Origin: Dicyema japonicum
Taxonomy: Eukaryota; Animalia; Dicyemida
Length of the DNA stretch: 64,000 nucleotides
Direction: 5' to 3'
NCBI GenBank assembly: GCA_011109175.1
Contig: RDEW01000013.1
Location: forward strand, 413,476 to 477,475
Shown: piece by piece, positions 3,200 to 64,000 of the stretch
Numbering within the stretch: the first letter of the stretch is position 1
How the letters are laid out: the number at the start of each line of letters is the position of its first letter
Translations under genes and position numbers: made by a program
Notes under the pieces: generated by a model
Told to the model about the DNA's origin: nothing
Database searches by the model: none
The model's input: only the letters and a program-made list of their open reading frames with translations

Positions 3200-4900
3200 T
3201 TTGTATGTCACTACGAATGCTATAATAATCAAACTGGACATACACAATGCTTTCAATAGCATTCGCAGAGACAGAATCATAGAAGCTAACATCTCCAGGA
3301 TCCCGGAAATCAGCAGGATGGTGAAACTTGTATACGGCTCCCCATGTACCCTGATATTCGGGCAACACATAATCGAATCCAAGACCGGAGTTCAACAAGG
3401 TGACCCCTTTGGCCCTCTGCTCTTCGCCTTGGGTATTGACTGTGCAGCATCGACGATGCGAACTACATTGAACCTATGGTACCTGGACAACGCGACCGTC
3501 GGAGGTAATTGGGAACTTGTGATGGCGAAAGTCGAGTCTGCCATCCCTGCACTTGCGGCACTAGGGTTAAAACCGAACCCGCATAAATGTGAAATTATAA
3601 ATGTTGCTTGCGGAGAGGAAAAATCCTGCCGTGCAGTGGCCGCTATTTCTGCTCACCTCCGCGATGTCTCGGTTACCCAAATTGAAAATGCAATTTTTCT
3701 TGACTCTCCCCTACACTGCAATAATGTTCAGCTCTCCTGGAGGAAAAATACATTACTCCAACAATTCACATTAAATTTACAAACCTTGGACTCCCACATG
3801 GCTTTGTTCTTCCACAAGAATTTCCACGACTTCTTTTTTTACGGACATGAACTTTTTAAGAGCCATCGACGAGAAGCTGAGGACTGCCGTTAAAGAAACG
3901 CTTAACATTTCCTTTGATAAAACTGACTGGATCCAATGAAAACTACCTCTTCGCTACGGAGGAATCGGAATACGCTCACTACTGGAACTCGCCCTCCCGA
4001 CCTTCTTTTTCGACATATGCTTCCAGTAGTCTCACACGCCAGATCCTACACTACATTAACGAATCGGACGTTGAACCAGTGGTATGCATGTCTCTGGAAG
4101 TCTGGACACTACTGGGTATGGATTCCCAATGAACGCTAATAAACAACGAGAATGGGACAAGTTTTTATGCTCAAAGATTATAGAAGAGATAAAACCTGTG
4201 CTTGATCAGCATCGTCTTGCTCGTCTGCTGCATCGACGAACGAGAGTGGAGCATGGCTCGGAGCATTGCCATGTACTTCACTTGGGATACTACTGGATGA
4301 CGATGCGACGAGGATTGTGGATTCCTTCCGCCTCGGAATGGATGTTTGCACGATCCATCGGTGTAGATGTGGAGGAATGATCGACGCGAAAGGTTTTCAC
4401 GCTCTCTCCTGCCGGAGGAGTGCTGGAAGGAGTCCTAGATACGTCGCAATCAATGCAGTCATTGCTTGGGGACTTGAAACTGTCGGATTTCCTGTCCAAT
4501 TGGAGCCGCTTGGACTTGCTCGAGCTAACCGAAGACCGGACGGAACCACTTTCTTCCATGGGAGAGTAATAAATACCTTGCCTGGGACGCCACATGTGTC
4601 GATAGTCTCTCTCTCCAACCTCTGAACGACAACAACTGACCCAGGCTCAGCTTTGGAGAAAGCTGAGACCATAAAGATAAAAAATACGCATGTCTTGGAG
4701 GACAATTCATCTTCGAACCAGTGGCAGTCGAAAATAGAGGAATAATTGGAAGCTGGTCACTGACGTGCTAAACAGGATCGACTGGTTCATCGCGAAGAAG
4801 AAAAACGATAGGAGAGAAAGGAGTTGGCTCATTGAGCGCATTTCCTTGCAAATCGAGAGGGAAAATGCGTTTTCTATTATGAGAGCGGCCAGAAGTTGTT
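3200..4900 (+). mobile_element. 5'-truncated, decayed CRE-clade non-LTR retrotransposon (RT + RLE)
   Basis: KLDIHNAFNSIRRD, GVQQGDPFGPLLF, WYLDN (YLDD mutated), CRCGGMIDAKGFHALSC, RRPDG; several frameshifts. Confidence 0.9.
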
Positions 4901-11595: not shown

Positions 11596-14275
11596 TAAGA
11601 AATTAAATAAATGTAAAGAAAAGAGAGTAAATGGTCATATAGCGGCTGACCTGACTGCGTGGTTATTCCTTCTCTGGATGGCGAGCGAAATTTTTCTCAC
11701 TCTTCTTGCAGGAAAGAGGGTGTAAGCCAAAACAGTCGATCCCATCGTCACGGATGTGGAACACAAACTTTAATCCCAGTCGTAATGAGATCCCAATACG
11801 GACGTATTCATCATCCAGGAAAGTACCCAAAACTCCATTGGGAACGGCGTTGATCCAGGCATCGCGCTCGGAATAAGTCTTCGACAACAAACAGGCACGG
11901 CGATGTTGGCTAGATGACACTAGCAAATCTTTGAAAGAATTCCAGCATATAGCATCGTCCAGGCCCCGCTGAGAGAATGAGGATGTCAGGGACAGCTGAT
12001 AAGCACAGTTCCAGACTTCACGAGCATGACCGGCGTCCTTGTCAATAGAGAATTCATGGAGGGAGTGTATAATTCTCTTGACAAGGATGTTGCAGGCTAT
12101 TATCGACGATAGATATGCAGAGAGAGAAAGGTCTACTGGGTTGCGAATTCCAAGCCCTCCGAGTTTCACTGGCAGCGTGGCTTTCTTCCATGAGTAATTC
12201 TCGAACTGGAAGTTGAAGATACGCTCCGCTGGTGTACGGAAGATCTCATTAATCTGTGCGAGTTGGTCACACTGGGTTAAACAAGGAGCAGTCCTCAGGA
12301 CATATGCAAGCCTCTGTACGTTGAGACTGTTTTTCAGAAAGAATAATGACGTATGCATGTCAAGTAGACACAAACAGGTCTAGAGTATCTCGAGTAACAT
12401 TCGTTTTTCACGCATAGCTCCTCCCATTGCATTTATGGTGATTGGGGATCCGAAGAATATAAGGCCTTCATCGAATGTGGAAATACTAAAAGAAAAAAAG
12501 AAGTGAAGATAATTCCTTGGTTGTGCGATTAGTTAAAATTAACTGTTCTTTACTTAATAAAGTGTGTGCCTATGCGGAGCTATAAATATTATGGCTCTCG
12601 TGAAAAGGCTATTATTATTATTTATTAGTGTAATTTAATTTCAGTCCAGCTTCCGACAGTGCTTGAATTATCACTTCCAAATCCCGGATAACAGCATCTG
12701 TGGGTCCTCCGAGGACAGCATCATCCAGGTACCTTAGGTTGAAGGGCGAGCGCGGAAGTTTGGTGATTTTCTCTATTGCAAGACAAAACAATAGACAAAA
12801 CAAGGGGATCTCCCTGTCGCACTCCAGAATTTGAATGGATTAGGTAGTCCTAGAAAAGTAATGATGGAGGTAGACTGTATGAGTGATCAGTGATCACAAA
12901 TTCGAAATTATCAGGGCATCTCTCAACACACGCCTATAGGATATTGTCCCTCCTTAGACTATTGAAGGCGTTCTTGATGTCCAGTTTGACCAGGACATGT
13001 CCCCGGGAATCTTCTATACTGCGGTTTAGGAATGTCCTCACTGAATGGACAGCAGCCTTGCATTCCAAGCCAATACCGACGCCTAATTGAAGGGGTTCAA
13101 GAATTTTGTGACGAGTGGAATAGAATGTCTGAGGCATTTTTAGCAGCCAGTCTTCTAAAGACAAACCCAACCGCAACCGGTCGTACTCCGTCGCCCTTCT
13201 TATCGAAGGTTATCAAATTAGCGGAAAACAAGACATGGCGGATAACTTCCGGAAGAACTCCAGACAGGATCCGGTTCATAAGTGAAGTAATTGAATTCGT
13301 AAGACGAACTCCCTGGTCTCCACGGACAAAGAGGTTTGATCTTTCAAATAGCCAGGTCTCATTCCGTCGAGCCCGTCACGGCTACTAGGAACAAAATTCC
13401 GTATTGTAAGGAGAACTTTATCGTTTGATGCAATCAGGGCACTCACTCCGGATGGAGGAGCGACTGGGCGTAGGTTTTGGGGTGGCAGAGGATGCTTGTT
13501 CAGTAAAATATTGTAGCCGTCGGGAGTCGGAGTTTGCGGTTCACTTGAAGAAAGTGCCCTGATGGCAGCGCGGATGCTACTTTTTATTAACTTCGACCTA
13601 GCAGTTCTTTTGAGACGCAGCACTTCGACTTCCTCGTTCTGACCACGTGTCTCCCTCGTACGGTTAGAAGCCTTGGGATAACTGGGGATGTGCATACCTT
13701 CCAAAAAATGAAGGTTGGTTTTCATGGTGGTAGCGAGAGACTCCTTTCCGTGACCATCTCTATCAAATCCCAGTGCAGAAGGCGCAAAACTGAATAAGCG
13801 CATCCAATCATGTACTGCGTTAGTCCGGAGGGCATCTTCGATCGTTTTGGAAAGGGCCTCCACAGCGACAAGTCGTACGGTTTTGGAATCCTCACAAGGA
13901 TAGTCCGTGAAGAACGCAATTCAGAGATGAGGCGTAAGAACGTTTGAAAGTCCGTGGTTGATGGGTAATCAACGGGAGAGTTAACTTGGCACGGGCATGG
14001 GGAACCTCCCAGCATAGGGCGAGGCATGACTGGCAGTGCCATCCTCCAAGCACGCTCGCTGCGGCTTGGGATAGCTTGATACACCCGAGATGAAAGAAAT
14101 CTTCACAAGCAGAGCAGGAGATCCCACGCTTCCGAGTTCTGACAAGCCAACAGGACGAACACATCTCAGTTGACTTGGCTGGTACCTTTTCATCGAAGTG
14201 GGAACATTCTTTTTAGGTGCTTTTCTCACAACAGGCATAATCACAACAAACGACCGTCCACAACAAGCACGTACA
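11596..14275 (-). mobile_element. Full-length but decayed CRE-clade retrotransposon with N-terminal PHD finger (copy B)
   Basis: PHD CSSC..CSACEDFFHLGC..WHCQSC (14024-14161), LQLGVGIGLECKAAVH, KLDIKNAFNSLRRD, YLDD, LHPLSC. Putative TSD AAAAAAACTT (minus strand) at 14276-14285 and 11586-11595, merging with the A tail. Confidence 0.92.
12488..12626 (+). mobile_element. 3' half of tRNA-derived SINE inserted into CRE copy B
   Basis: Matches SINE body and tail at 26100-26335, 36024-36237 and 55782-56187; (TAT)n tail. Confidence 0.87.
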
Positions 14276-29617: not shown

Positions 29618-32600
29618 TACAGAAATACAACTTATAAACGGAACACTCATTTACTCGATTTTTTTATATTGAATGATTAAATTTTTAACAAAAATAGAAT
29701 TTTAAAAATACACACTTAACTTTAGCCTTTTAAAAAAATTAAAACGCCCTATAATTAGTACGTAATTAAATCCAGTTTTTTCTGAACAAAATAAAAAAGA
29801 GAACAAAAAAAATTCTCTATTTTTTCCAAAGTTTTTTGAACCCATTTTTATTTTATTACACGTGTTGTTCGTGTTTGATGGTTCTACAACTTACATACCA
29901 AGAAAAAGGAGAAATTATTGCTTATTATAAAGTGGAAAGTCATATCCACAAATTCGAAATCTTACCGAAAGATCCCTCAGTGCTATCTCGAGAGTCATTA
30001 AAAACTTCACCATGAATAATTTCTTCGAGAGAAAAAAAGGCTCAGGGCGAAGATTTTCCCTTAACTCTGATGATCTCAAAATAATTGACAAAAAGGTGAT
30101 GTTAATTTCAATTCTGAAATTTTACGTTATGAAACGGGAACTGTTGTCAGATCACAGACAGAGGAACTACCTGAAAAGACTGAATATATCGACGTTTCAG
30201 CCTACGAAAAGGCCATCTATCGAAAAAACACAAAACGACGAGACTTTATCAGTGCACATAGTGGAACATGTTACCAAATGTGTTCTGGAATCGAGTTATC
30301 TTTAGTGATTAATTTATTTAATCCCGATGGACGAAAATTTGTCTGGAGAAAGACTGGAGAAAGGATAATTTGTTGCCTTTTTTGGAGAAAACAGGAATCC
30401 GGTCTCCAATTTTTCAGCAAGATTCAAAGCATACCTGTTAAGGTGGCTAAAGATTTTTTTAATGAACACGGAATTGAGTTAGTACAATCCCGATTTGAAT
30501 CTAATCGAGCACGTGTGGATTTTTATGAAACAAAAAATAAGAGGAACCGAATTTAATAAAAGAGTGACCTATTCGAAGAATTGAAAAAAATTTGGAACGA
30601 TCTCACGATAGAATATGCAAAATTGAGTTTACTATCACGTGTGGTCTTGTTGTGAATAATTGTATCATCATGGAGCGTCGTTCATACAATGGATCAACAC
30701 ATATTACACCCGAGAGACTAGACACTACATGCTCTACATGCGGTTTTGCCAATGCACGCAAATATGGACTTTTCTGCTCGTCTTGCCGTGACTTTTTCCA
30801 CCTTGGATGCATAAAGATGTCTCAGCGGGCTGCGTGCTCGCTCTGCCTTTGGAACTGCAGTGTCTGCATGGGAACTGGTTGGAAAACCCAGAGGATCATT
30901 CCAAACGAACACGTTGAACCAAACGAGTCCTCTAGACTTCAATAATATGGACAACCTCTTGCTCTTCTTGTCGGATCTAAGGAAAGCCATGAAGATCCCA
31001 ATCAGGATCCCAAGACCGGTCCGGATCCCCGCGGCTACATGTCTGGCCTCTGCAATTGACAATGCTCTCACGTCCGACGACCTGGAGGCCTGGCTAAAAC
31101 TCCTCAGTTTTGCTCCGATGGCCCTTGGAATTCCATTTATCGACTCAAAGGGAGATCAACGGAATACAGAGGAAAGCACGACACTTGGAAACTCCCTTTC
31201 CTCAAAAATGAAGAAGAACATCCAGGTTTTCTATGTGCATTCTTTCACCAAGACGGAAGTCAAGAAATCAAGACATTCTGATTCCAATCCTCTGTTTATT
31301 TGAATGGCCCGGAAAAACTTAAAAAGAGAATGAACCGCAAACTATTCGAAGGCGACGTCCGAGCGGCGTTGCGCGTCGTCGCCAGCGACGAAACTGTTAT
31401 GGCTGCGACACCTGAGGTGCTAGAACTACTCAGACATAAACATCCATGTGCTCCGGAAGATTACCGCCCATTCGTGCTTCCGGGAAATTTGTCAAGGATG
31501 ACCGTCACCGAAGGCGAAGTGCGACGCGGCATTTCGTCCTTTGCGGCGAGTAGCAGTGGAGGCATCGATGGCTTGCGGCCGGGTCACATCAAAGATCTTA
31601 CGGCGGAGGCTACTGCAGAAGCTGGCTGCAACCTTGTCAAATCAATTACAAAACTGGTTATGCGTATTTTGAACGGAGATATTCCTCCCCACGCAAGGGA
31701 GCTCCTTTTCAGTGCACATTTATTGGCCTTCAAAAAACCTGAAGGTGGGGTCCGCCCCATCGCAGTCGGCAACTATTTCAGAAGATTGACAGCGAAAATT
31801 GCATGCAGCATTGTCTCTCCGAGAATATCTGAAGAATTTTCCCCCTCCAACTGGGGGTTGGTGTAAGGAACGGATGCGAGGCGGCAGTGCATGCTGCGAG
31901 GTGTTTTTTTGGACAGAATGACGAACAAAACCCACACATTGGGGTCAAGCTGGACATCTGCAATGCCTTCAATTCATTGAGGAGGGATCAAATTTTCGAA
32001 ACTACAAGCAAACGAGCCCCGGAACTTATTCCACTTGTCTTCCTCGCTTACGGAACAAATTCTTCACTGGTTTTCGGGGACAAGATTATCTGTTCGGAGA
32101 CCGGAGTTCAACAAGGAGACCCACTTGGTCCACTACTCTTCGCTCTGGCCATCGATGAAATTGTCCGCTCTATAAACACACAACTTAACCTTTGGTATCT
32201 CGATGACGCCACAATTGGAGGGCCGTGGAGAAAAGTACACGACGTTCTGTCACATGCCGTGCCAGCACTACGAAACCTCGGACTTGAGATAAACATAAAG
32301 AAATCGGAGCTAATAAATATCACATACTCGGAGAGTGATTTCATCAACGTGGTCGAGTCTTTCAACTCGGTATTACCTGGAATTACTGTCGTACCCAGGG
32401 AGCGGACATACTTTCTTGGGTGCCCACTTGACGAAAAGGAACTGCGGAGCCATCTACAAACAAAAGAGGATGAACTCTCCAGAGTCACGGAAACTTTCCT
32501 TACTCGATGGTCATACAGCGTTCTTCCTTTTGAAGAATAGCATCGGCTTGCCCAAACTCCTATATGCTCTCCGATGTTCTCCCTGCTTCAAACATCGTGA

Positions 32601-34014
32601 CATCCTCCTGTCACTGGATAGGACATTGAGAAAATCAGCTGAATTACTTCTAAACATCCAGTTTGATGCGCCGAGTTGGAACCAATGCAAGCTTCCTACA
32701 CGCCTCGGAGGAACGGGTCTCAGGTCGGCGCTGGAGATCGCCTATCCAGCATATGTGTCATCGCTCTCAAGTGGAAGCCTTTTGGTCCAAGAAATCCTAC
32801 GTATTACAACCGGACTCTCTTGGGAAAAAGTCTTCGACGAAGCTCGTTGCGAATGGTGTGAAACTGGTTTGGATATGCCGAACGATCCTTCGAGGCAACG
32901 TGACTGGGATGATATTTACTCCAAGAATATCTTCGACGTGCTAAAGTCTGAGGCCAACCAGCATCGTCTTGCATGCCTCGTGTCCGCCGCCAACCATGGG
33001 AGCGGAGCGTGGCTGGATGCACTCCCGTCTTCCTCCCTGGGGACCCTATTGGACGATGACTGTATTCGGATTGGAATCGCACAACGCCTGGGAGCTGATG
33101 TTTGCGTCGAACACCAATGTCGCTGTGGAGGGATCGTCGATGCCAAAGGGCTGCACCCGCTCTCGTGCAAAAGGAGTGCGGGCAGAGCACCCCGCCATGC
33201 TGCTATGAACAACATTGTCTTGCGAGCTCTTGAAGCGGCAGGCTTCCCGGCAGTATTGGAACCTGTGGGATTGGACCGCGGAGATGGGAAAAGACCGGAT
33301 GGGTTAACTATCTTTCCGTTCACCGAGGGAAAATCGCTCGTATGGGACTGCACTGTTGTGGATTCTTTCTCGAACTCGATGATGCTCAGCTCGGCGCAGT
33401 CTGCTGGATCGGCAGCCGATCTGGCCGAAAAATCAAGATTAAAAAATATGGCGAAATTGGAGACCGCTACCGTTTTGTACCGGTAGCAATCGAGACGTCT
33501 GGTGCGGCTGGAAGTATTACAGCCTCTTTCCTAAAGGAAATCGGGGGAAAATTGGCCCACCGCAAGAAAGACGTGCGGGAAGCGGTCTGGCTGAGGCAAA
33601 GAATTGGTATCGCAGTTATTCGCGGAAACGCTTACTCCGTGATGTCAGCAGCCGCTCTCCCCCATAGTTAATAAATAATATTTTATTGTTAATAAATTTT
33701 TTGTTTAAAAAAAAATTAAAAAAAAAAAAAAAGAATATGCAAATCGTTTGTTGAATCAATGCGGAGTAGAATTTTAGAAGCAATAAATTCTCAAGGGGGT
33801 CATACTAAATTTTGAACTATTTTTGTTCTCTTTTTTATTTTGTTTGAAAAAAATTAGGTTTGAATACTTACCAAAATCTTTGACGTTTGGATTTTTGTAA
33901 AAGGCAAAAGTTAAGCTTATACTTTAAAATTCAATTTTTTATTAAAAAAAATTAATCTTTATTTATAAAAAAAAAATTGAGAAATTGGCTGTTCCGTTTT
34001 TATTTGTATCGCTA
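29618..34014 (+). mobile_element. Tc1-type DNA transposon with about 200-bp imperfect TIRs, interrupted by CRE copy C
   Basis: LTYQEKGEIIAY, SGRR, NPDGRKFVWRKTGE, ELKKIWNDLTIEY | ..ESMRSRILEAINSQGGHTKF. 29618-29815 aligns with the rc of 33815-34014. Confidence 0.85.
30622..33731 (+). mobile_element. Full-length CRE-clade non-LTR retrotransposon: PHD finger - RT - CCHC - RLE, poly(A) tail (copy C)
   Basis: 12-bp TSD AGAATATGCAAA (30610-30621 and 33732-33743); PHD at 30730-30867; GVQQGDPLGPLLF, YLDD, CRCGGIVDAKGLHPLSC, RH, RPDG, WD; five frameshifts. Confidence 0.95.
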
Positions 34015-56314: not shown

Positions 56315-56530
56315 TTTATCACGTGTCTGTCGTGGTATGGTAAAAAAAACTGCTCAGTGGAAATACAAGAAGACATGGATTCTAATAAAATCACACCAGC
56401 AAGGTCATCTAACAAGTGTTCATTTTGTTGTGATTTTCTTGGATCCAATTTCAATACTCGAAAACGTGGTATCCCATTTTCTGTATGTGCAGATTTCTTC
56501 AACCTCTGGTGTTAGTCCATACGTTTAGGG
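56315..56530 (+). mobile_element. Decayed 5' end (PHD region) of a third PHD-CRE copy
   Basis: Frame starting at 56417: CSFC..TRKRGIPFSVCADFFNLWC*, versus copy B TRKRGISCSACEDFFHLGC. Upstream tatcacgtgt is shared with copy C. Confidence 0.68.
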
Positions 56531-59432: not shown

Positions 59433-62400
59433 TAATAAATAATGTGGATAAGTGTAACATTTTTCCTAATAAATAAATAATGTGGGTAAGTGGAGCATTT
59501 TTCCTAATAAATAAATAATGTGGGTAAGTGGAACATTTTTCCTAATAAATAAATAATGTGGGTAAGTGGAACATTTTTCCTAATAAATAAATAATGTGAA
59601 TAAGTGGAACATTTTTCCTAATAAATAAATAATGTGAATAAGTGTAACATTTTTCCTAATAAATAAATAATGTGAATAAGTGTAACATTTTTCCTAATAA
59701 ATAAATAATGTGATAAGTGTAACATTTTTCCTAATAAATAAATAATGTGAATAAGTGGAACATTTTTCCTAATAAATAAATAATGTGAATAAGTGGAACA
59801 TTTTTCCTAATAAATAAATAATGTGAATAAGTGGAACATTTTTCCTAATAAATAAATAATGTGAATAAGTGGAACATTTTTCCTAATAAATAAATAATGA
59901 ATAAGTGGAACATTTTTCCTAATAAATAAATAATGTGAATAAGTGGAACATTTTTCCTAATAAATAAATAATGTGAATAAGTGGAGCATTTTTCCTAATA
60001 AATAAATAATGTGAATAAGTGGAACATTTTTCCTAATAAATAAATAATGTGAATAAGTGGAACATTTTTCCTAATAAATAAATAATGTGAATAAGTGGAA
60101 CATTTTTCCTAATAAATAAATAATGTGAATAAGTGGAACATTTTTCCTAATAAATAAATAATGTGAATAAGTGGAACATTTTTCCTAATAAATAAATAAT
60201 GTGAATAAGTGGAACATTTTTCCTAATAAATAAATAATGTGAATAAGTGGAACATTTTCCTAATAAATAAATAATGTGAATAAGTGGAACATTTTTCCTA
60301 ATAAATAAATAATGTGAATAAGTGGAACATTTTTCCTAATAAATAAATAATGTGAATAAGTGGAACATTTTTCCTAATAAATAAATAATGTGAATAAGTG
60401 GAACATTTTTCCTAATAAATAAATAATGTGAATAAGTGGAACATTTTTCCTAATAAATAAATAATGTGAATAAGTGGAACATTTTTCCTAATAAATAAAT
60501 AATGTGAATAAGTGGAACATTTTTCCTAATAAATAAATAATGTGAATAAGTGGAACATTTTTCCTAATAAATAAATAATGTGAATAAGTGGAACATTTTT
60601 CCTAATAAATAAATAATGTGAATAAGTGGATACATTTTTCCTAATAAATAAATAATGTGAATAAGTGGAACATTTTTCCTAATAAATAAATAATGTGAAT
60701 AAGTGGAACATTTTTCCTAATAAATAAATAATGTGAATAAGTGGAACATTTTTCCTAATAAATAAATAATGTGAATAAGTGGAACATTTTTCTAATAAAT
60801 AAATAATGTGAATAAGTGGAACATTTTCCTAATAAATAAATAATGTGAATAAGTGGAAATTTTTCCTAATAAATAAATAATGTGAATAAGTGGAACATTT
60901 TTCCTAATAAATAAATAATGTGAATAAGTGGAACATTTTTCCTAATAAATAAATAATGTGAATAAGTGGAACATTTTTCCTAATAAATAAATAATGTGAA
61001 TAAGTGGAACATTTTTCCTAATAAATAAATAATGTGAATAAGTGGAACATTTTTCCTAATAAATAAATAATGTGAATAAGTGGAACATTTTTCCTAATAA
61101 ATAAATAATGTGAATAAGTGGAACATTTTTCCTAATAAATAAATAATGTGAATAAGTGGACATTTTTCCTAATAAATAAATAATGTGAATAAGTGGAACA
61201 TTTTTCCTAATAATAAATAATGTGAATAAGTGGAACATTTTTCCTAATAAATAAATAATGTGAATAAGTGGAACATTTTTCCTAATAAATAAATAATGTG
61301 AATAAGTGGAACATTTTTCCTAATAAATAAATAATGTGAATAAGTGGAACATTTTTCCTAATAAATAAATAATGTGAATAAGTGGAACATTTTTCCTAAT
61401 AAATAAATAATGTGAATAAGTGGAACATTTTTCCTAATAAATAAATAATGTGAATAAGTGGAGCATTTTTCCTAATAAATAAATAATGTGAATAAGTGGA
61501 ACATTTTTCCTAATAAATAAATAATGTGAATAAGTGGAATTTTTCCTAATAAATAAATAATGTGAATAAGTGGAACATTTTTCCTAATAAATAAATAATG
61601 TGAATAAGTGGAACATTTTTCCTAATAAATAAATAATGTGAATAAGTGGAACATTTTTCCTAATAAATAAATAATGTGAATAAGTGGAACATTTTTCCTA
61701 ATAAATAAATAATGTGAATAAGTGGAGCATTTTTCCTAATAAATAAATAATGTGAATAAGTGGAACATTTTTCCTAATAAATAAATAATGTGAATAAGTG
61801 GAGCATTTTTCCTAATAAATAAATAATGTGAATAAGTGGAGCATTTTTCCTAATAAATAAATAATGTGAATAAGTGGAACATTTTTCCTAATAAATAAAT
61901 AATGTGAATAAGTGGAACATTTTTCCTAATAAATAAATAATGTGAATAAGTGGAACATTTTTCCTAATAAATAAATAATGTGAATAAGTGGAGCATTTTT
62001 CCTAATAAATAAATAATGTGAATAAGTGGAATTTTTCCTAATAAATAAATAATGTGAATAAGTGGAACATTTTTCCTAATAAATAAATAATGTGAATAAG
62101 TGGAACATTTTTCCTAATAAATAAATAATGTGAATAAGTGGAACATTTTTCCTAATAAATAAATAATGTGAATAAGTGGAACATTTTTCCTAATAAATAA
62201 ATAATGTGAATAAGTGGAGCATTTTTCCTAATAAATAAATAATGTGAATAAGTGGAACATTTTTCCTAATAAATAAATAATGTGAATAAGTGTAACATTT
62301 TTCCTAATAAATAAATAATGTGAATAAGTGGAGCATTTTTCCTAATAAATAAATAATGTGAATAAGTGTAACATTTTTCCTAATAAATAAATAATGTGAA

Positions 62401-64000
62401 TAAGTGTAACATTTTTCCTAATAAATAAATAATGTGAATAAGTGTAACATTTTTCCTAATAAATAAATAATGTGAATAAGTGTAACATTTTTCCTAATAA
62501 ATAAATAATGTGAATAAGTGTAACATTTTTCCTAATAAATAAATAATGTGAATAAGTGTAACATTTTTCCTAATAAATAAATAATGTGAATAAGTGTAAC
62601 ATTTTTCCTAATAAATAAATAATGTGAATAAGTGGAGCATTTTTCCTAATAAATAAATAATGTGAATAAGTGGAGCATTTTTCCTAATAAATAAATAATG
62701 TGAATAAGTGTAACATTTTTCCTAATAAATAAATAATGTGAATAAGTGTAACATTTTTCCTAATAAATAAATAATGTGAATAAGTGGAACATTTTTCCTA
62801 ATAAATAAATAATGTGAATAAGTGGAACATTTTTCCTAATAAATAAATAATGTGAATAAGTGGAGCATTTTTCCTAATAAATAAATAATGTGAATAAGTG
62901 GAACATTTTTCCTAATAAATAAATAATGTGAATAAGTGGAACATTTTTCCTAATAAATAAATAATGTGAATAAGTGGAACATTTTTCCTAATAAATAAAT
63001 AATGTGAATAAGTGGAACATTTTTCCTAATAAATAAATAATGTGAATAAGTGGAACATTTTTCCTAATAAATAAATAATGTGAATAAGTGGAACATTTTT
63101 CCTAATAAATAAATAATGTGAATAAGTGGAACATTTTCCTAATAAATAAATAATGTGAATAAGTGGAACATTTTTCCTAATAAATAAATAATGTGAATAA
63201 GTGGAACATTTTTCCTAATAAATAAATAATGTGAATAAGTGGAACATTTTTCCTAATAAATAAATAATGTGAATAAGTGGAACATTTTTCCTTAATAAAT
63301 AAATAATGTGAATAAGTGGAACATTTTTCCTAAAAATAAATAATGTGAATAAGTAACATTTTTCCTAATAAATAAATAATGTGAATAAGTGGAACATTTT
63401 TCCTAATAAATAAATAATGTGAATAAGTGGAACATTTTTCCTAATAAATAAATAATGTGAATAAGTAACATTTTTCCTAATAAATAAATAATGTGAATAA
63501 GTGGAACATTTTTCCTAATAAATAAATAATGTGAATAAGTGGAACATTTTTCCTAATAAATAAATAATGTGAATAAGTGGAACATTTTTCCTAATAAATA
63601 AATAATGTGAATAAGTGGAACATTTTTCCTAATAAATAAATAATGTGAATAAGTAACATTTTTCCTAATAAATAAATAATGTGAATAAGTGGAACATTTT
63701 TCCTAATAAATAAATAATGTGAATAAGTGGACATTTTTCCTAATAAATAAATAATGTGAATAAGTGGAACATTTTTCCTAATAAATAAATAATGTGAATA
63801 AGTGGAACATTTTTCCTAATAAATAAATAATGTGAATAAGTAACATTTTTCCTAATAAATAAATAATGTGAATAAGTGGAACTAATAAATAAATAATGTG
63901 AATAAGTGGAACATTTTTCCTAATAAATAAATAATGTGAATAAGTGGAACATTTTTCCTAATAAATAAATAATGTGAATAAGTGGAACATTTTTCCTAAT
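59433..64000. repeat. 38-bp tandem satellite (AATAAATAAATAATGTGAATAAGTGGAACATTTTTCCT)n, about 120 units, runs off the window end
   Basis: Directly visible tandem array. Confidence 0.99.

Follow-up and report, generated by a model that had tools for sequence, protein, structure and literature searches.

A young, high-copy retrotransposon family of Dicyema japonicum that joins an N-terminal PHD finger to a restriction-like endonuclease

A defective retrotransposon copy at 30622-33731

The window analysed here is a stretch of 64,000 nucleotides from Dicyema japonicum (contig RDEW01000013.1), and coordinates refer to it unless another contig is named. The published assembly comprises 67.5 Mb in 377 scaffolds, with a GC content of 36.7% and 48.9% repeats (PMC6736024); the genome total used in this work was 67,542,437 bases in 377 contigs, with a gap rate of 4.1%. 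Positions 30622-33731 of the window hold a defective copy of a young, high-copy retrotransposon lacking long terminal repeats (non-LTR), of the type that carries a restriction-like endonuclease (RLE), and the protein of its family begins with a PHD finger. An earlier note on this DNA, made from the sequence alone, had described a 3.1-kb element with a target-site duplication (TSD) and a poly(A) tail. Both were recovered, the former as a 12-bp repeat of AGAATATGCAAA flanking the element and the latter as an A-rich run at its 3' end (Table 1). Together with a reverse transcriptase (RT) and the existence of 5'-truncated copies, these features identify the element as a long interspersed nuclear element (LINE).

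Translation of the element yields six overlapping pieces spread over three frames, the open reading frame (ORF) changing frame at five places, near 30928, 31290, 31838, 32492 and 33425. Two of these changes separate the window copy from nearly all near-identical copies and three are common to some copies; most fall within short homopolymer runs, and at all five places both length states are present in contigs from public runs. All the motifs of a finger followed by RT, CCHC and RLE (RH, RPDG, WD) were located in the order given by the earlier note. In the RT, GGVRPIAVG lies at 31744, GVQQGDPLGP at 32103 and WYLDDA at 32193, and Pfam RVT_1 scores 54.6 bits on this part of the window copy. In the endonuclease, the RH pair lies within 33184-33213, GKRPDG at 33286-33303, VWDCTVVD at 33340-33363, KIKKYGE at 33435-33455 and PVAIETSG at 33480. 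The single protein of the element consists, in this order, of a PHD finger, a conserved IPxRIPK helical region, the RT, a helical linker, a CCHC knuckle and a PD-(D/E)xK endonuclease.

Table 1. Features of the element and of its relatives in the window.
Feature	Position	Strand	Evidence or remark
Whole element, 3110 bp, single ORF with five frame changes	30622..33731	+	TSD, A-rich tail, motif order
Left TSD copy, AGAATATGCAAA	30610..30621	+	100% identical to 33732-33743
Additional 12 nt at the 5' end, absent from other copies	30622..30633	+	comparison of 5' junctions
CACGTG (E-box) at the common 5' end	30636..30641	+	5' ends compared
PHD-type C4HC3 zinc finger, 20 residues past the start codon	30730..30867	+	CSTC...CSSC...FFHLGC...WNCSVC
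IPIRIPRPVR motif, in a shifted frame in the window copy	30995..31024	+	retained in relatives whatever the N-terminal module
RT core, from GGIDGLRPGH (31549) to past YLDD (32196-32207); frame change near 31838	31549..32357	+	Pfam and motifs
Thumb and alpha-helical linker (FFLLKNSIGLPKLLYALR at 32521, GGTGLRS)	32521..33100	+	motifs, RT sequence comparison
CCHC zinc knuckle	33103..33168	+	C, C, H and C columns invariant in 48 sequences
RLE (RH, KRPDG, WDxT, K..KY, ETSG); frame change near 33425	33184..33503	+	motifs, alignment, fold
Poly(A) tail, broken by TT	33707..33731	+	A-rich run at the 3' end of the element
Right TSD copy	33732..33743	+	12-bp perfect direct repeat of 30610-30621
Copy B, older, 3'-truncated, of another subfamily, with many stops	11678..14185	-	finger at 14012-14179 keeps 8/8 ligands, 46% identical
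Decayed finger remnant of a further copy	56381..56512	+	His replaced, one Cys lost, then a stop
Related copy lacking its 5' part, with RT to RLE	3222..4890	+	33-49% amino-acid identity

Finger, reverse transcriptase and endonuclease belong to one protein

At other loci of the genome the finger and the RT are joined in frames that are open by nature. Locus L033 (1263-3497, minus strand) has a 745-aa open frame in which a PHD match (27.2 bits) and RVT_1 occur together, and a comparable frame of 637 aa, with PHD and RVT_1, lies at L035. At L068 (1712-4615, corresponding to C316:201211-204114) an uninterrupted ORF of 967 aa contains PHD (27.0 bits), RVT_1, CCHC and RLE; its protein is present letter for letter in the ESM Atlas, and the sister subfamily that it represents is 43% identical to that of L033. 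Because these natural frames bear both domains, the finger and the RT are parts of one protein. The earlier note had regarded the finger as a family trait, and in the sister copies it does stand in frame with RT, CCHC and RLE. Within the window the same finger recurs in copy B with all eight zinc ligands kept, and the third, decayed finger was found where it had been claimed, with a Cys and the His lost and a stop behind them. Two further frames that seemed open over 1049 and 1149 aa consist of runs of N, probably assembly gaps.

The endonuclease was identified by alignment and by fold. Across 48 aligned C-termini the CCHC ligands, RH, E-P, K-R-x-D-G and W-D-x-T are invariant, and K..KY and E-T-x-G nearly so. 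Pfam assigns no family to the RLE piece, either in the window copy or in the sister frames, and in the intact 967-aa ORF it reports PHD and RVT_1 only. A structural model of a natural 205-aa frame covering the endonuclease (L033:594-1208, minus strand) reached a predicted local distance difference test (pLDDT) score of 88.8; its seven best matches in the PDB are all R2 proteins, with E values of 1e-6 to 1e-4, followed by restriction enzymes and Prp8. For the RT, a match to R2 is found at the sequence level as well (E = 3.7e-8). Pfam finds no apurinic endonuclease (APE) domain in that intact ORF of 967 aa. Having both a CCHC knuckle and a PD-(D/E)xK endonuclease on the C-terminal side of its RT, and lacking an APE domain, the family is an RLE-type LINE.

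The N-terminal domain is a PHD finger

The C4-H-C3 finger is present as the earlier note described it, and its identification as a PHD finger is supported by profile, alignment and fold. In the window copy the Pfam PHD score stays below the cut-off of 24 bits for this family (PF00628), at 19.4 bits within a piece of 117 aa and 21.5 bits when the finger of 56 aa is scored by itself, whereas the fingers of L033 and L068 score above it. We aligned 35 fingers, 7 from the Dicyema japonicum genome and 28 from public homologues, whose identity to the window copy ranges from 18 to 89%. All eight zinc ligands are invariant in 35/35, and Pfam PHD matches every one of them at E <=0.01 (best 2e-9). When a profile of the 35 was compared with solved structures, all 60 matches listed were PHD fingers, headed by Alfin-like 3 (AL3, 2.3e-10), an Arabidopsis PHD finger (1we9), PHF2, Alfin-like 1 (AL1), PHF8, BPTF, EBS, CFP1 and TAF3. 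An AlphaFold model of the window finger (pLDDT 93.4) gave the same picture, with AL3, AL1, BPTF, KIAA1718 and PHF2 in complex with peptides of histone H3 di- or trimethylated at lysine 4 (H3K4me2/3) as the best Foldseek matches (template-modelling score, TM, 0.78-0.82) and PHD fingers in all of the top 50 places.

Five diverged subfamilies in the genome (the window copy, copy B, L031, L033 and L035) keep eight of eight ligands, and at least 150 scored finger matches were obtained among 532 candidates. Since the finger recurs in such numbers, and with eight invariant ligands in the 35 aligned examples, it is not a product of chance. A RING score had been named beforehand as the outcome that would speak against a PHD finger, and the ligand order found is C4HC3; that the domain is a RING or some other treble-clef domain, or that its cysteines are so arranged by chance, is most improbable, for this reading draws on weak Pfam matches to zf-rbx1 (E = 0.041) and C1 domains, as opposed to the ligand order, the invariance of the ligands and the uniformly PHD character of the 60 profile matches listed and the top 50 fold matches.

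A young, abundant and dispersed family

A search of the genome with the 3' end of the element returned 562 candidates, and all 40 copies that were scored are 95-100% identical. Thirty copies were compared at their 3' ends. Their poly(A) tails measure about 8-27 nt, and their downstream flanks are mutually unrelated except for one duplicated locus. Thirty different 5' flanks are likewise unrelated and AT-rich. Three pairs of 5' and 3' ends show duplications of 12-13 bp, each beginning with A. On the strength of this identity, this number of candidates and these unrelated flanks, the PHD-RLE family is young and abundant, with copies in the hundreds, and its insertion is not sequence-specific. 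Word depth in public runs climbs along the element and reaches at the 3' end about 15-20 times its level at the 5' end, as is usual where copies are 5'-truncated.

Most full-length copies (5' ends of L002-L030) open with (T)ATCACGTGTGG, so that a CACGTG E-box stands at the extreme 5' end. The window copy begins 12 nt upstream of this common start; its ATG is at 30670, preceded by a 5' untranslated region of about 36 nt. From its position the terminal E-box may be part of an internal promoter. A bHLH-Zip protein was considered as a high-copy partner of the family and set aside, as the genome holds only 22 HLH matches.

The window copy has inserted into the C-terminal part of a mariner-type transposase remnant (30278-30621 and 33744-33810), the frame of which resumes beyond the element. 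At the end of the window (60001-64000) the GC content falls to about 0.21 and the GC skew is strongly positive, probably reflecting a simple or satellite repeat block. Contig pieces of the element at a low depth of about 2x, with 90-99% identity over much of its length, also occur in public run X6 (2015), labelled as a second organism (organism B); its source may be either a related species or a sample of the host in which the parasite was present.

Related reverse transcriptases carry exchangeable heads

Public homologues were taken as the best 120 of 775 matches to a PHD-bearing query, a sample biased towards PHD-bearing relatives. At least 28 of these 120 show the strict C4HC3 pattern, several more have partial or variant fingers, and nine carry PF00628 and PF00078 together in precomputed annotation; intact public proteins of 840-1130 aa (e.g. 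P0001, P0012 and P0035) have the same layout as the Dicyema japonicum family. Other heads among the 120 are C2H2 fingers (in Lepidoptera), a C..C...HGP motif, a Cys-rich CC.CNG module, SAP, and an OTU protease with C2H2. The IPxRIPK region that follows the head is retained regardless of the type of head. Two of the head types bear no Pfam label and each forms its own group in the RT tree: a Cys-rich CC.CNG...C..C.C.K...C..C head in P0069, P0076, P0118 and P0119, and a C..C...[LV]R.HGP...C.G.G head in P0080, P0081 and P0096.

The RT tree was computed with FastTree from 114 rows drawn from the same biased set of 120 matches and was midpoint-rooted; many of its rows are N-terminally truncated ORF calls. 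PHD-bearing rows are confined to two groups, one of 40 rows (support 99) that includes the window family and one of 22 rows (support 96), and all other heads fall into a third group of 52 rows (support 97).

The earlier note knew of no described element of this architecture. This holds for the literature, since no paper describing PHD, RT and RLE in one element was found, and fails for sequence data, where the layout is common among the homologues. The negative result comes from the full-text literature, where most matches to PHD were to doctoral theses or dealt with APE-type LINEs, Repbase and Dfam lying outside that search.

One homologue, P0068 (L070/L071), is annotated as a protein of Octopus sinensis and is 90% identical in amino acids and 88% in nucleotides to a sister PHD-CRE-II subfamily. 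Its contig (VCDQ01010770.1 of GCA_006345805.1, 43 kb) has flanks that match at least eight other Dicyema japonicum repeat families at 66-95%. Dicyema japonicum is a kidney parasite of Octopus sinensis, and the contig is either DNA of a related dicyemid within the octopus assembly or a sign that host and parasite have many transposons in common.

Placement among RLE-type LINEs

CRE, R2 and NeSL elements insert sequence-specifically. CRE1, CRE2, SLACS and CZAR of trypanosomatids insert solely into spliced-leader genes, and R2, with N-terminal C2H2 fingers and a Myb domain, targets 28S rDNA. None of these profiles fits the present family. Thirty different 3' flanks and 30 different 5' flanks are incompatible with spliced-leader insertion; Pfam finds neither Myb nor C2H2, and the dispersal of the copies likewise departs from R2; and neither a protease nor C2H2 is found by Pfam, nor are the flanks related to one another, as would be expected of NeSL or Utopia, which have an Ulp1-like protease and/or C2H2 fingers and target spliced-leader or U2 snRNA genes (PMC4640811).

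For comparison by sequence we used the RLE-LINE alignment in the supplement of Mahbub et al. 2017, which derives from the RepeatMasker protein library and holds R2, R4, Dong, NeSL, Utopia, HERO and CRE (PMC5678591). Within it the family's words QQGDPL, RPIAVG, GCEAAVH, KNAFN and WYLDD occur in the Cre-1_BM entry only, and a further family word, GGLGLR, is found in two entries of the CRE section. For most of the conserved motifs, ten-residue words of Cre-1_BM are found again, with up to two mismatches, in 20-66 of the 120 homologues, and the homologues closest to these words are lepidopteran proteins. The supplements of the Utopia paper contain no words in common with the RT of the window family. 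By motif words, as opposed to phylogeny, the closest named element thus appears to be Cre-1_BM of Bombyx mori, classed by RepeatMasker as LINE/CRE-II. The earlier note's label of CRE is accordingly supported in the Repbase and RepeatMasker sense, by virtue of the shared words, and does not fit in the strict trypanosomatid sense, there being no site specificity.

It is improbable, in our view, that the element belongs to another RLE clade (NeSL/Utopia, HERO or R4/Dong) and is called CRE merely by RepeatMasker convenience. Such a placement could appeal to P0071 and P0086, relatives whose OTU protease and C2H2 fingers recall the protease-bearing NeSL and Utopia elements (PMC4640811), to the very different look of the RTs of trypanosomatid CRE1 and CRE2 in the published alignment, and to the fact that our placement is one by motif words. 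The alignment, however, holds every one of these clades and confines the five RT words to Cre-1_BM, and the family motif GGLGLR lies in its CRE section (PMC5678591).

A proposed tether at the head of the protein

Taking these results together, we regard it as somewhat probable that the family, an RLE element with a PHD head, copies itself by target-primed reverse transcription and uses the finger as a tether, probably to chromatin or to a chromatin-bound partner. By analogy with the R2 structures that resemble its C-terminal half, the endonuclease would nick the target, the RT would use this nick for priming, starting at the poly(A) end, and the TSD would arise from another cut at a distance of 12-13 bp. 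The PHD finger would serve as the tethering module between particle and target, as suggested by the lack of a common sequence at the insertion sites and by the other modules that take its place in sister lineages. What this tether grips would probably be chromatin or a chromatin-bound partner and not a DNA word, and a tether of the chromatin type fits the loss of site specificity. Guidance by chromatin is a step that we infer mainly from the position of the finger and the missing site specificity. The wider proposal that an old, large RLE lineage swapped a DNA-reading head for a PHD finger, and that its sites are now chosen through a chromatin feature instead of a DNA word, we consider unlikely.

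Several points weigh against this overall reading. With five frame changes, at each of which both length states are seen in contigs from public runs, the window copy is dead and cannot itself make the protein. The assignment to CRE-II rests on shared words rather than on a rooted tree with reference clades, and the RT tree has the midpoint rooting, sampling and truncated rows described above. The remaining points lie in the finger itself. In alignments of the window finger to AL3 and PHF2, from which the cage positions were taken, the beta-1 cage position (Trp in AL3, Met in PHF2) is Gly19 and is aromatic in 2/35 fingers, and the position two before the His is Phe28 and is aromatic in 17/35 (10 Phe, 4 Trp, 3 Tyr). 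Conserved instead are Asn14 (25/35), Arg16 (33/35), Lys17 (29/35) and Trp47 (31/35). Arg16 and Lys17 directly precede the strand by which known readers pair with the H3 tail, and basic residues at this place argue against the binding of a basic histone tail. When the finger was co-folded with residues 2-41 of the genome's own histone H3 the score was 0.00, a result that weighs neither way on binding. Among the possible ligands, which are an unmodified tail, another protein or nucleic acid, the residue pattern favours none.

The strongest competitor of the chromatin tether is a finger of PHD fold with a non-histone ligand, in which the Asn-x-Arg-Lys loop would bind nucleic acid, either the target DNA or RNA of the element itself, or else an acidic protein of the host. 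We hold this to be possible, if rather unlikely. It would account for the conservation of Asn14, Arg16 and Lys17 beside unconserved cage positions, and in sister lineages DNA-binding modules (C2H2, SAP) occupy the same place and would do the same job; yet every one of the best matches, by sequence and by fold, is a reader of histone tails, and no nucleic-acid-binding PHD finger stands among the top matches.

Classical reading of H3K4me3 is unlikely, because the methyl-lysine cage is incomplete and the Asn-x-Arg-Lys loop is conserved in its stead. The earlier note had rightly observed that Phe, here Phe28, replaces the Trp usual in H3K4me3 readers, and the aromatic cage that marks this subclass is lacking, with Gly19 on one side and a variable position 28 on the other. 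The specific proposal of a classical reader with Phe for Trp that directs insertion to active promoters seems to us decidedly improbable. Its nearest structures are indeed H3K4me2/3 complexes (AL1, AL3, BPTF, PHF2 and TAF3), and the relatives P0012 and P0021 bear the canonical W-[FY]-H-x-x-C-V-G-L; against this, one wall of the cage is Gly in the window subfamily and aromatic in only 2/35 fingers, the Trp position is aromatic in only 17/35, and the pocket is flanked by basic residues.

RLE-type LINEs are the model of site-specific retrotransposition and are now being engineered for gene insertion, and it is their N-terminal head that sets the target. In nature this head is freely exchangeable, related RTs being joined to PHD, C2H2, SAP, Cys-rich or OTU and C2H2 modules, and the PHD version coincides with dispersed, non-specific insertion and a very high copy number in a 67.5-Mb genome of which half is repeats. 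Should the finger read chromatin, the family would offer a precedent from nature for RLE retrotransposition guided by chromatin; should the exchange of heads retarget insertion by way of chromatin, it would be a natural example of relevance to the reprogramming of R2 for genome engineering; and should nucleic acid be what it binds, the finger would be unusual among PHD fingers. In terms of annotation, this is a common repeat family of which the window holds a dead copy. PHD fingers are already known in APE-type LINEs, and the PHD-RLE layout is common in sequence data with automatic Pfam labels. Its interest lies chiefly in a natural case of head-swapping among R2-like elements.

Comparison with known systems

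The H3K4me2/3 readers AL1, AL3, BPTF, PHF2, PHF8 and TAF3 share with the finger the C4HC3 spacing and the Trp before the seventh ligand. They differ in having acidic or aromatic residues where the window finger has its conserved basic Asn-x-Arg-Lys loop, and the cage of the window finger is incomplete, with Gly19 and a variable position 28. PHD fingers of APE-type LINEs occur in ORF1 of CR1/L2-like elements and, among Crack and CR1 elements, in some cases within ORF2 upstream of APE, and so resemble the present case as fingers on a non-LTR retrotransposon that sometimes stand N-terminal to an endonuclease-RT protein (PMC3708506). These elements have an APE endonuclease and belong to other clades, however.

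The trypanosomatid elements CRE1, CRE2, SLACS and CZAR are, like the window family, single-ORF RLE LINEs with a CCHC knuckle before the endonuclease. We know of no report of a PHD finger in these elements. Their RTs are far removed from that of the window family, which in contrast to them is dispersed over unrelated sites; the GGLGLR linker motif is held in common through the two CRE-section entries (PMC5678591). Cre-1_BM is closer, a single-ORF RLE element that shares motifs of the RT, the linker and the CCHC knuckle. Its printed alignment begins at the RT, so that the comparison covers the protein from there on, and its nearest relatives in our set (the lepidopteran P0073, P0094 and P0101) begin with C2H2 fingers and not with PHD.

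R2 (8gh6, 9nl2, 9nl3, 9dou) differs from the window family, which has a PHD finger, no Myb domain by Pfam and no site specificity. The two agree in an architecture of RT, linker, CCHC and RLE and, as far as the model predicts, in the fold of the endonuclease, and presumably also in target-primed reverse transcription.

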